A DNA stretch of 64,000 nt from Macrostomum lignano (Eukaryota). The first letter of the stretch is position 1; the number at the start of each line of letters is the position of its first letter. Below are positions 47,024-50,673 of the stretch, piece by piece. The translations under genes were made by a program, and so were the position numbers. The notes beneath the pieces were generated by a model. It was not told the origin of the DNA. It was given only the letters and a program-made list of their open reading frames with translations, and made no database searches. The stretch lies in the NCBI GenBank assembly GCA_002269645.1, contig NIVC01001484.1, positions 269,527-333,526 on the forward strand, given 5' to 3'.

Positions 47024-50000
47024 ATGAGTACAATGAAGGAAGAGGGTTTGTTTCTATTTAATTGCATTCTTGGCGTTTCTTCTCGACGGCATTCCATATG
47101 ACCTGCCTATAATAGAACTGTCCATCGGTTTTAAATCGGCTACAGCTACTGGACCCTGCTTAGGAAACTGCCCCTGCGGCTACTGAGCCCTGCTTAGGAA
47201 ACTGCCCCTGCAGCTACTGAGCCCTGCTTAGGAAACTGCCCCTGCAGCTACTGAGCCCTGCTTAGGAAACTGCCCCTGCAGCTACTGAGCCCTGCTTAGG
47301 AAACTGCCCCTGCAGCTACTGAGTCCTGCTTAGGAAACTGCCCCTGCAGCTACTGAGCCCTGCTTAGGAAACTGCCACACAGCTACTGAGTCCTTTATAA
47401 ACCACTTCTTTGCCTTTGTGCCTGAAGCACAGGTACAAGTATCCTATAGCTCTGTAAAATCGTAGTAGCTCATTGTACACTAAGTTGGTATATTTTCGCA
47501 ACAAGCTATACTGTCACACTTTCACAAATATGCATATGTATCATTTTCAATCGTTAATGCGTTCCATACAAGCCCATATAATTTATTACCGTCAGCAATG
47601 GCTCAGTCTCACATAGCAGAGTTTTCATGCTGTAGCAACATCAGGAAACTAGCTAGCTAGCTACTCATTGCTCCCTCGGGTTTTAGTAACAATTTTGTCG
47701 ATAAGCGAGCGTGAGAACTAATAGCGAGAAAGCAGATAGCAGATAGAGAGAGGAACATGAGTAGAGAGTAGAGACGAAACTTTTTGTCTGCCTTATGCTC
47801 AGATCGACAAGACGTTTTGCCTCGCCGAGCGCATATCCGTTCTGGCGGAAGCAAACTGGTTTTTTAGAGTAACATCAGCAGAGGCAGCGGTGTAAAGCAA
47901 CGGCACAGGGGTTAGCCCTTTCTTATCTTGTTTGCCTGTTGCAAAACGAATAGCTTATATTGCTGCTACTAGAAGGAAGCAAATCCCTCAGGCATATTCT
48001 AGCATATAGAAAATCAATGCCCCTAGGTAGGGAAGCGCATTATACCTGTTTTTATAACGAAGCTAATCAAGTGTACCCCGACGCGAAGAATCCTAAATTA
48101 GACGAAAGATCCTCAGCCCTCTAAGTCTGCGCTCTTTTTGAGTAGCATTAGCTAGCATTTTCTCTGCTGATTTTTCTACACCTTAATTTCTGCTTCAGCG
48201 CTTTTTGAGCTGCTTTTCCCAGTGCCTACCTGTTCTTAGTCGCCTCTGTCAAATTATAATCCCTTTCTTCTTTAAAGAATACTGTCATTGCAGGCTGTGT
48301 TAGTCTTTTCCTATGCTATTCTCTCCCCCCCATGTCTCACAAAGCGCGGAGCCACGGACATCTGGAATAGGGAATCTGGAAAGAGATTTAGAAATCGTTA
48401 AAGGGTACAAGTAGAGCAGCTCAGCGTTAGAATCGCTGAATTGCTGAAAATGTGTGCACCACATTTATTTTGGGGCTTGTGCGATTCTCGCTTATATGGG
48501 CCTAGAGATGGGAGTACGACGTTTGCTTTCGAGAAGTTTGCTTGCAGGAATTTTGCTTGCCGAACTTTGCTTGCCGAGCTTTGCTTGCGGAATTTTGCTA
48601 GCCGAACTTTGCTTGCCGAACTTTGCTTGCGGAATTTTGCCTGCCAAACTTTGCTTGCCGAACTTTGCTTGCCGAAGTTTGCTTGCAGGAAATTTGCTTG
48701 CAGGAATTTTGCTTGCCGAAGTTTGCTTGCAGGAACTTTGCTTGCCGAACTTTGCTTGCGGAATTTTGATGTCTGCTTCCTAGAAATTCGCAATCACAAT
48801 TGCAAGGTTTTAACTTGCCGAATTAGAATATTTTCTTGTCTGCTTGCTTGTTTTGATTGCTTGTGAAGTTGGTCCGTCAATTATTACTTACTACAGATGC
48901 TTTGCAAGTGGATTCTTATCAGCGTCGACGTAAACTGACTTGACACTGAGCTTTCAAACTAGGCTTATAGAGTTTCATTCTAAGAATTTAGGGGTCGCAA
49001 TATAAAGCTGTCGCAGCGTAAGTTCAATCGTACGTCGGAACTTTTACACTACGGAGATGGGAGCTAAGAACGATCTTATCTTACGATGTTCTGCATTAGG
49101 GCTTTTCAAATCCGCCATATCCTCATACAAAATCATAACACTATAGGCGACTTCCACGAATCTTAGAATACAAAAATTAGAAATACAAGAGCTCAATAAT
49201 AGGTTCTTTAAGGTTCCGCAAGAAAACTGTGGCTGGCAAATCTCGGCAAGCAAAGTTCCTGCAAGCAAACTTCGGCAAGCTTATGTGCAGCAAGCAAATT
49301 TCCTGCAAGCAAAATTCGGCAAGCAAAGCTCGGCAAGCAGACTTCGGCAAGCAAACTTCTCGCGAGCAAATTTCATAGACCCCCCAGAGAGTGTACATGC
49401 TTGATGATGATTAGAAAGTCAGGATCGGTGTACACCCTGTGTGAGCGTACATGCCTGCAGTACAGTATTCGCGCGCATTTCCATGCCCACTTCTTGACTT
49501 ACTTAAATGAGCTTCCCCTATTATTCTTTTAGTTTATTTATTCAAATTAAGTTTGTTAGTTTATTATGCTTCGTAAATTGGAACAAGTTAATAACAGTTA
49601 GGCTTCCATTCCAGAATTTGCGCTAGTGTAGAAGTCCTTGACTCGGCCATTTTTTGTAGCGTCCCACAGCTACAGCTAGTTATTAATCGGATTGGATGCT
49701 GCAGCTAGCGGAGAGTATGGGCGGACATGGGCGGCTGGGTGTTTTTTGCTTATTTCCTAACCTCTAGTCTATCCTCTCTGCCCCTCTCGATTCAACTGAA
49801 TATTAACTAACCTCGCTTTTAGCGCTCTGCTAAACCCCGTGACAGTTTCGCATTGCCTGATATTCCTTAATTCCTACAGGTGTCGCTTCGTTTTTTTTAG
49901 CATCTTCTGTAGCAATTCTACTAGAGGCTATGCCTGATCCCGCAGTTAGAGCAGCTAATAGAGTAAGATTAATTTTTGCATGACTTCATGTTACATCTCA

Positions 50001-50673
50001 GCGTCGCTTTTATGTTATAGTTATATATATATTTATTGCATTTGCGTTTCTATTCCAGGCGCAATACAACAGTCAAGCTTCTCTAGAATCAGCAGCGGCA
50101 GTAACGACAGATAGAGAAGTTTCCGAATATTTAGTTTCAACACTAACGCCCCCAGTGGCTGGTAATGCAAGCACAGTAGTATCTACTGCAGCCGCTCCTA
50201 CCGCAGAGTTCTTACCAGGTCTAACCATTCTGCTTGGCATTGCCGTCATAGTATTGTCACTAATCCTATTAGTAATCTGCTGTCGCCACTATTGTCCTTG
50301 TTGTCGTTGGTATCGACGAGATCATCGATTTAACTATAATAATAATAACAATATTGAACAGTTTTACGATCACAGCGATGCCTCGGTTGGTGGTGCGTTT
50401 CTACATGACGCCTTAGTTGGCAAGAAGCATGTGCCGGTGATCTTTGCCGAAGAGCTGGAAGCTGCCGCCGAAGTTGAAGCGATGTCATTGGGCACGTCCC
50501 GTCCGATGGTGCTACCTGTGGAAAGGCCGCCTGTTGAAATGCCGGCCATTTTCGATGACGAAGAAGAGAATGGCGAACACATGGACGCAGACGAAGCCGT
50601 TCGCATGGTGGGTGGAGTTGGCAGCTTTGAGCGCCTTCGCTATGGTAACAAGCCACCGCCGCCTCCGCCTTGA
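47024..50673 (+). CDS. Small type I membrane protein with a dystroglycan-like cytoplasmic tail (~239 aa)
   Basis: Main exon 50059-50673 and exon 49880-49962 are in phase (AGA|gtaaga..ttccag|GCG). The first exon 47024-47045 (MSTMKEEG) is tentative. Signal-like VASFFLASSVAILLEA, S/T/A/P-rich stalk, TM GLTILLGIAVIVLSLILLVI, Cys cluster, and KKHVPVIFAEELE matching beta-dystroglycan [13 protein letters not shown]. Confidence 0.72.
47150..47395. repeat. 34-bp minisatellite (CTGCTTAGGAAACTGCCCCTGCAGCTACTGAGCC)n
   Basis: About 7 units read directly. Confidence 0.96.
48510..49386. mobile_element. Foldback-like element with modular, internally repetitive inverted arms
   Basis: Left arm ~48522-48765 is made of (TTTGCTTGCCGAAC) units and right arm ~49240-49370 of the reverse complement. 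The outer ends match (tttgctttcgagaagtttgc vs rc tttgctcgcgagaagtttgc). Confidence 0.75.

Follow-up and report, generated by a model that had tools for sequence, protein, structure and literature searches.

Can the membrane-spanning and cytoplasmic part of dystroglycan, a cell-matrix receptor, exist as the product of a gene of its own? This question is raised by one exon in a stretch of 64,000 nucleotides from contig NIVC01001484.1 of the free-living flatworm Macrostomum lignano (hereafter the window, meaning the whole of that stretch). GenBank entries for its three genomic copies give it no more than the name "hypothetical protein BOX15_Mlig025938g1/g2, partial", and a first-pass annotation had read it as a truncated dystroglycan paralogue without the laminin-binding modules and the terminal PPxY motif. 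With moderate confidence, we favour the view that the gene, Mlig025938, encodes an intact and expressed, lineage-specific paralogue of dystroglycan, in which a short N-terminal stub and a transmembrane helix precede a beta-dystroglycan-type tail, and which may act as a scaffold. A literature search by gene identifiers and by motif string retrieved no paper mentioning the Mlig025938 genes.

Anatomy of the protein and its link to dystroglycan

The coding sequence lies in a single exon. Its translation shows 100% identity both with P0001 and with the cluster PAA54198/PAA79140, composed of three GenBank entries. Related proteins of the same species were sorted into groups. Group A is Mlig025938, the window gene (P0001), with the genomic copies L001–L003, where L001 is the window copy and its position 1 corresponds to window position 40062. 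Group B comprises Mlig002569, Mlig008284 and Mlig025820 (P0004, P0007 and P0008, at loci L005, L006 and L007). Group C is Mlig018437 (PAA52136.1, P0006, locus L004 on NIVC01003294.1), named "Dystroglycan C-terminal domain-containing protein" in UniRef. The features of the window exon are as follows.

50059–50673, + strand: single coding exon of the proposed mini-dystroglycan Mlig025938, one uninterrupted frame of 204 codons and a stop (translation)
50059–50208, + strand: short N-terminal segment, presumed extracellular (hydropathy and composition)
50209–50277, + strand: transmembrane helix LTILLGIAVIVLSLILLVI (Kyte-Doolittle, AlphaFold and alignment with the paralogue helices)
50278–50304, + strand: juxtamembrane cysteine cluster CCRHYCPCC and basic RWYRRDHR, candidate palmitoylation sites (CC pair invariant in groups A, B and C)
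50401–50460, + strand: conserved dystroglycan juxtamembrane motif LHDALVGKKHVPVIFAEELE (invariant residues, Pfam DAG1 match and human alignment)
50500–50544, + strand: second conserved motif RPMVLPVERPPVEMP, counterpart of a human 15-residue block (invariant residues and BLASTP)
50626–50670, + strand: C-terminal segment FERLRYGNKPPPPPP, common to group B as FERLRYGNKPAPPPP, fitting [KR]xxPxxP

From the N-terminus onwards, a segment of about 50 residues is followed by the helix, CCRHYCPCC, RWYRRDHR, a run of asparagines, LHDALVGKKHVPVIFAEELE, TSRPMVLPVERPPVEMP, an acidic stretch and the C-terminus FERLRYGNKPPPPPP. The transmembrane helix, the cysteine cluster, the tail motifs C-terminal to it (KKHVPVIFAEELE and then TSRPMVLPVERPP) and the end in RYGNKPPPPPP, all of which had been pointed out in the first-pass annotation, are present in the translation of 50059–50673, and no PPxY motif occurs anywhere in its 204 residues. 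The Kyte-Doolittle maximum of 3.3 is reached at residues 56–76, within the single hydrophobic segment of the protein. AlphaFold gives one confident helix at residues 51–78 (pLDDT 81–94) and predicts the remainder to be disordered, so that the tail amounts to a succession of short linear motifs.

The tiny mucin-like ectodomain after a signal-like segment, as originally described, stands only in part. The approximately 50 residues before the helix are indeed 54% S/T/A/P, net acidic and non-hydrophobic, with one NAS sequon, no cysteine and AlphaFold pLDDT values below 50, but the hydropathy scan of this segment gave no hydrophobic signal, and no signal peptide was demonstrated in it. At the other, cytoplasmic end of the helix, the CC pair is invariant in all three M. 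lignano groups and has been expanded to six cysteines in group A. This cluster may be palmitoylated.

The homology of the tail to the transmembrane and cytoplasmic region of beta-dystroglycan is real but indirect, running through P0004 and P0006 as intermediates. When 1.84 billion representative proteins were searched exhaustively with phmmer, three matches other than the protein itself came up: the two M. lignano proteins P0004 (group B, E 7.8e-12) and P0006 (group C, E 1.8e-4), and a bacterial protein, P0005 (E 5.7e-5), which was rejected as spurious, the match consisting of six weak stretches in a repeat protein of 2116 residues. Both P0004 (29.3 bits) and P0006 (52 bits) exceed the cut-off of 23.3 for Pfam DAG1 (PF05454). 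In tblastn of the same two proteins onto the window, only this exon was matched (3.5e-16 and 4.9e-6, respectively). Group C provides the closest link to canonical dystroglycan, with a tail that has 29 of 59 aligned residues in common with human beta-dystroglycan (E 6e-5).

Groups A, B and C are colinear over the helix, the CC pair and both motifs. Residues K123, H124, V125, P126, I128, F129, E131, E132 and L133 are invariant in the three groups, as are P149, L152, P153, E155, P157, P158 and P162 in the second motif. The window protein has, in other words, both the helix and the conserved cytoplasmic juxtamembrane motifs of dystroglycan.

Direct comparisons of the window protein nonetheless count against this reading, as do certain points on its 5′ end and its N-terminal stub that are given with those subjects below. 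Although the core of the earlier inference, a truncated paralogue without laminin-binding modules and PPxY, holds, the Pfam DAG1 match, which the first-pass annotation had itself asked for, is not significant for the protein alone: it scores 13.4 bits (E 0.05) where 23.3 is needed, over residues 121–163 and profile positions 187–225. BLASTP against human beta-dystroglycan gave 15 of 41 identities with an E value of 0.21, which is not significant. The alignment pairs KKHVPVIFAEELE...RPMVLPVERPPVEMP with human blocks of 13 and 14 residues, and reproduces the 9/13 identity that had been noted for the 13-residue block. Sequence searches among solved structures (PDB) with the protein, with an A/B/C profile and with a group C open reading frame (ORF) retrieved no dystroglycan chain. 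Moreover, relatives outside M. lignano were found neither by phmmer nor by word-indexed searches with the exon, the A/B/C profile and the putative ectodomain of group C; long-term conservation can therefore be judged only from the comparison of paralogues A and B.

Could the likeness then be convergent or due to chance, in an unrelated small single-pass adaptor of the Shisa-like or WBP1-like kind? A precomputed annotation lists a weak PF27717 (Shisa5_N) match for all three copies, and a small single-pass protein with a proline-rich tail is what Shisa proteins are. Yet a Pfam scan at E ≤ 10 gave DAG1 only (whether the scanned copy of Pfam contains PF27717 was not established). In addition, all six cysteines follow the helix, on its basic and presumably cytoplasmic side, whereas the cysteine-rich domain of Shisa precedes the helix, and the colinear match to groups B and C over the helix, the CC pair and both motifs also stands against an unrelated origin. 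We regard this explanation as hardly credible, and retain a dystroglycan-derived tail.

Absence of upstream ectodomain coding and the gene's 5′ end

A dystroglycan-type tail in a partial model may simply be the last exon of an ordinary full-length dystroglycan, with the upstream exons (signal peptide, cadherin-like/IG, mucin and IG2_MAT_NU) missed by annotation. In fact, the deposited coding sequence (CDS) is flagged as partial, and a clear 5′ truncation of the group C model shows that the annotation of this genome can miss such exons. The features of the sequence ahead of the exon bear on this.

43220–46396, + strand: upstream neighbour, a FARS2-like gene (mitochondrial-type phenylalanyl-tRNA synthetase), L001 3159–6335, with PF01409 and PF03147
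46451–46734, 47143–47394 and 48533–48768, with an inverted partner array at 49214–49374: tandem arrays in the upstream interval (repeat analysis)
49507–49572, + strand: second candidate cis-spliced mini-exon MSFPYYSFSLFIQIKFVSLLCF, a signal-like peptide, with ATG and phase-0 GTAAA donor
49930–49962, + strand: candidate alternative cis-spliced mini-exon MPDPAVRAANR, with ATG and phase-0 GTAAG donor
50053–50058, + strand: splice acceptor TTCCAG, most likely a spliced-leader trans-splice site (motif match, model starts, kept in all three copies)

The last exon of FARS2 ends at 46396, on the same strand and 3.66 kb ahead of the exon, and a complete same-strand FARS2 lies upstream at about 3.7 kb in all three genomic copies, which leaves a full-length dystroglycan to be accommodated in that interval. 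Most of it consists of satellite repeats, the part at 46451–49374 being largely tandem and inverted arrays, and of the ORF pieces with 45 codons or more from 46.4 to 50.06 kb, none had a Pfam match at E ≤ 1. When all upstream ORF pieces of the group C locus were compared with the 64-kb window by tblastn, they matched repeat artefacts only. No cadherin-like, SEA or IG2_MAT_NU coding sequence was found upstream of the exon; the cadherin-like/SEA exons that would have made the gene an ordinary dystroglycan were not detected in the 3.66-kb interval or elsewhere in the window, in line with the first-pass annotation. In group B, moreover, the ATG is closely preceded by an in-frame stop and by an indel that shifts the frame. 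The comparison of the three locus copies is uninformative about conserved upstream exons, the copies being 95–99% identical throughout, across coding and non-coding sequence alike.

The start originally placed at 47024 fared less well. The ATG at this position opens an ORF of 25 codons that ends in TGA, with no GTRAG-like or GTAA donor in the required phase before the stop, and the span 47024–50058, made up of satellites and of ORF pieces without Pfam match, is unsupported as coding sequence. The truncated architecture is well supported by the genomic context and by the sister paralogue group B, and a full-length dystroglycan with missed exons appears quite improbable.

The defining core of dystroglycan, from sponges to mammals, comprises IG2_MAT_NU, a transmembrane helix, a cytoplasmic domain and a dystrophin-binding site (PMC4582122, Adams & Brancaccio 2015). 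In the window gene we found neither IG2_MAT_NU nor the alpha-dystroglycan N-terminal domains and long mucin region that form the laminin-binding glycan platform. Lacking IG2_MAT_NU, an alpha subunit and PPxY, and staying below the Pfam threshold, the window protein therefore does not count as a dystroglycan and is homologous to one part of that protein only.

With the upstream interval empty of ectodomain coding, where does translation start? Exon 50059–50673 offers no start codon before the part encoding the transmembrane helix. Upstream of it, the frame is closed by an in-frame TGA whose last base is 49983, at a distance of 75 nt from the exon, and between this TGA and the helix no ATG occurs. 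It follows that splicing has to provide the start, and that any sequence joined to the exon must fit upstream of a phase-0 acceptor. The sequence at 50058/50059, TTCCAG followed by GCG, fits the motif [T/C]TNCAG, which is enriched at M. lignano trans-splice acceptors, and the spliced leader of this species is 35 nt long and ends in ...TTGCATG (PMC8629364). The exon begins in phase 0, with the leader AUG in frame. Hence the acceptor motif, an in-frame leader AUG and the lack of a usable genomic start, which together mark mRNAs that take their start from the leader, are all found here. All reported flatworm leaders have a terminal AUG, which is usable as an initiator (PMC12582326, citing Cheng et al. 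2006).

The M. lignano annotation was made by removing the leaders, splitting the transcripts at trans-splice peaks and predicting ORFs with TransDecoder (PMC5730564). A CDS that starts at the acceptor would be left "partial" because this pipeline trims the leader supplying its sole start codon. In the three copies, the deposited CDS begin at offsets of 0, +3 and +12 nt from the AG, and the trans-splice acceptor at 50058/50059 is most likely the real 5′ end of the gene. Two of the three models, it should be said, begin 3 and 12 nt inside the exon and not at the AG, and the evidence for trans-splicing at this site consists of the motif and the deposited model starts.

Alternatively, the same short protein may receive its ATG from a cis-spliced first exon, either the mini-exon at 49930–49962 or the one at 49507–49572, the latter encoding a cleavable signal-like peptide. 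Each of the two offers an ATG with an open frame behind it, and its GT donor is in phase 0 with the acceptor; the 49930 exon has the consensus donor GTAAG, and the CTACAG ahead of it could itself be a trans-splice acceptor. This mini-exon is kept in the three copies, as is the whole flank, and occurs in no deposited model. None of the three transcript-derived models includes such an exon, all of them starting no more than 12 nt from the 50058/50059 acceptor, although either candidate would have given TransDecoder a complete ORF. The donor of the 49507 exon, GTAAA, departs from the consensus, and in the AT-rich sequence around it hydrophobic codons are to be expected by chance. A cis-spliced start is, in our judgement, unlikely, and neither mini-exon would add a dystroglycan ectodomain; the leader AUG is preferred below.

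Several other features of the locus were recorded. A JmjC/JHD gene starts 3–4 kb downstream in L001 and L002, whose gene lists reach that far, and none is listed for L003. An operon with FARS2 was considered and rejected, as the gap of 3.66 kb (about 2.7 kb once tandem repeats are subtracted) exceeds the repeat-adjusted limit of 1 kb for M. lignano operons. The 14-nt satellite GAACTTTGCTTGCC forms two arrays of opposite orientation (48533–48768 and 49214–49374) about 500 nt apart, with arms of up to 124 nt that are 88% complementary, 0.7–1.5 kb upstream of the exon. In this outron or promoter region, the pair may represent a foldback element or mark the two ends of a transposon. Within the FARS2 gene, a 27-nt tandem array of 26 copies (44933–45646) reads as NQVYPVFPR repeats in frame with the last FARS2 exon, and the fusion of the two yields a spurious ORF of 455 codons (45029–46396); the array is presumably intronic. 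The 3′ flank toward the JmjC gene carries tandem arrays as well, at 51113–51482 (71/144-nt units) and 53282–53763 (33/69-nt units), with repeat numbers that vary among the locus copies.

Constraint on the short form and its paralogues

Is the short protein maintained by selection, or is it a decaying partial duplicate of a dystroglycan last exon, transcribed as a pseudogene fragment? The latter would agree with the missing genomic start codon, with the lack of any orthologue found outside M. lignano and with an N-terminal segment that gathers only amino-acid-changing differences. Between the window copy and the other two, the exon shows seven differences, all nonsynonymous. Six of them fall in the 54 N-terminal codons, where no synonymous difference occurs, and a single one in the 450 nt encoding the helix and tail, whereas the flanks differ by about 2.6% (26 of 993 aligned bases). 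The helix and tail are thus roughly ten-fold more conserved than neutral sequence, whereas the N-terminal stub evolves no more slowly than such sequence and is at most under weak constraint.

Against decay, the frame of 204 codons is intact in three copies with flanks that differ by 2–3%, and the helix and cytoplasmic part have diverged about ten times less than these flanks. In group B, 2 of 576 coding bases differ among the copies, versus 4–10% in the flanks. Moreover, groups A and B, at about 38–42% identity, both keep the two motifs and the C-terminal FERLRYGNKP.PPPP, which group C lacks; the retention of the same motifs and the same C-terminus by such divergent proteins argues for selection on the short form itself. 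A pseudogene fragment is accordingly a very improbable account of this exon, and we continue with a functional gene.

The three locus copies fit the hidden polyploidy for which M. lignano is known. The coding sequence and the 600-nt upstream flanks are identical between L002 and L003, while the window copy differs from both by 1–3%; L002 and L003 are therefore very recent duplicates or alleles.

Group B represents an independent instance of the same short architecture. Its members resemble the window protein in their length of about 190–205 residues, their single coding exon, an acidic N-terminus without a signal peptide, the CC pair behind the helix, both conserved motifs and a common FERLRYGNKP.PPPP end (KPAPPPP in group B). 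They differ from it in having a genomic ATG, in passing the Pfam DAG1 cut-off (29.3 bits), in another N-terminal stub, in a glycine-rich insert and in their neighbours, which are RAD54-like and MFS genes.

Among the three group B copies, a 1-bp indel is located 16 nt upstream of the shared ATG (about 10040–10064 in L005, L006 and L007). As it shifts the frame between copies, the annotated 5′ extension of group B cannot be coding. An in-frame stop lies just upstream, and the RAD54-like gene ends 1.2–1.8 kb upstream. Read from the shared ATG, the product has 191 residues (MPAEASEE...), with an acidic N-terminus of 36 residues and no signal peptide. The group B proteins are probably complete at this length and mislabelled as partial.

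Group C is unlike the window protein in its longer gene, its poly-Q inserts and the absence of the FERLRYGNKP end. Its frame is open for about 130 codons upstream of the helix, and a long open frame at 9874–10863 of L004 holds both helix and tail; the deposited Mlig018437 model starts in another frame (L004 9995–10243). The upstream ORF pieces in L004 1855–10866 contain LPSWL...GLIEGVP (He_PIG, E 0.1) together with PGSVVNFTVDWT and CPVDQLVILRRV, the latter two spotted by eye. Pfam searches of these pieces gave nothing significant (only He_PIG with E 0.1 and, over the region of the helix, DAG1 with E 0.095), nor did BLASTP of them against the human IG2-MAT-NU. There is a hint that group C is the conventional, much longer dystroglycan of the species, with a wrong N-terminus in the deposited model. 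A separate gene with a strong DAG1 match alongside the short one, as considered in the first-pass annotation, does exist in the form of P0006 with its 52 bits, while its full canonical form stays at the level of that hint.

On the gene strand, no PPxY was found within 6 kb downstream of the group C exon (L004 10600–16723). None of P0001, P0004 and P0006 has a PPxY in the available sequence, so that it may be asked whether dystrophin is recruited in M. lignano at all, and if so by what means.

Proposed role and comparison with known systems

In the mechanism we propose, the spliced leader would be added at TTCCAG, and its in-frame terminal AUG would start a protein of about 205 residues, M being followed by AQYNSQ.... 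The predicted mRNA junction reads TTGCATG followed by GCGCAATAC, which would give the N-terminal peptide MAQYNSQ..., with MPDPAVRAANRAQ... as the alternative start peptide. The protein has no signal peptide; from its acidic N-terminus and the strongly basic C-terminal flank of its helix, the positive-inside rule predicts an N-out/C-in insertion without a cleaved signal, as in beta-dystroglycan. Palmitate would probably be attached to the cysteine cluster at the membrane face, and the KPPPPPP end, in place of the PPxY to which the dystrophin WW domain binds, would suit SH3 or polyproline-binding domains. Such a lipid-anchored scaffold may recruit some of the cytoplasmic partners of dystroglycan while remaining unlinked to laminin, and could either compete with full-length dystroglycan or function independently as an adaptor.

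As to the partners, human residues 787–819, by our own numbering of the human sequence, presumably span the block that is conserved in the window protein, ending in ...MPLIL. The two retained motifs represent the best-conserved part of the dystroglycan cytoplasmic domain; by the same numbering, they would correspond to the rapsyn RING-H2-binding region and adjoin the dystrophin ZZ contact segment. In vertebrate beta-dystroglycan, residues 787–819 bind rapsyn through its RING-H2 domain and residues 780–794 contact the ZZ domain of dystrophin, and it is residues 777–878, not the terminal tail, that are needed for the health of mouse muscle and neuromuscular junction (PMC13250547; PMC10752950). 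Perhaps groups A and B even form a small Macrostomum family of matrix-uncoupled tail proteins that modulate, or compete with, the dystrophin-glycoprotein complex, group A being dependent on the leader AUG. This wider proposal is tentative, and we hold it to be doubtful in its full extent.

The middle part of the beta-dystroglycan tail is strongly conserved in animals, yet it is much less well understood in function than the terminal PPxY. A natural protein having this module without the ectodomain and PPxY would be evolutionary evidence that the module works alone. RNA interference and transgenesis in M. lignano would offer a handle on its partners and function free of the confounding by adhesion. 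As to the annotation, six entries called "partial hypothetical proteins" probably stand for short proteins that are complete, and in one of the two genes the start codon is probably supplied by the spliced leader. The scope is that of one genus and a well-known protein class, and the impact is moderate: what is described is a lineage-specific offshoot of dystroglycan.

In comparison with beta-dystroglycan (DAG1, PF05454), the window protein has the same predicted single-pass N-out/C-in layout, with a cysteine at the membrane boundary and a basic stretch behind it. Common to both are KK.VP.IFA.EL followed by P..L..E..PP, and a proline-rich extreme C-terminus after a tyrosine. It differs in having no IG2_MAT_NU, Gly-Ser maturation site, alpha subunit or signal peptide, in ending with KPPPPPP where beta-dystroglycan has PPxY, in six juxtamembrane cysteines instead of one and in its sub-threshold Pfam score. 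A second counterpart is found in the beta-dystroglycan fragments that are generated in vertebrates by metalloproteinase cleavage (PMC10752950). These likewise consist of a short extracellular stub, a helix and the full cytoplasmic tail, uncoupled from alpha-dystroglycan and laminin. However, the vertebrate stub is a product of proteolysis and keeps its PPxY, whereas the M. lignano protein is encoded by a gene of its own and has lost it.

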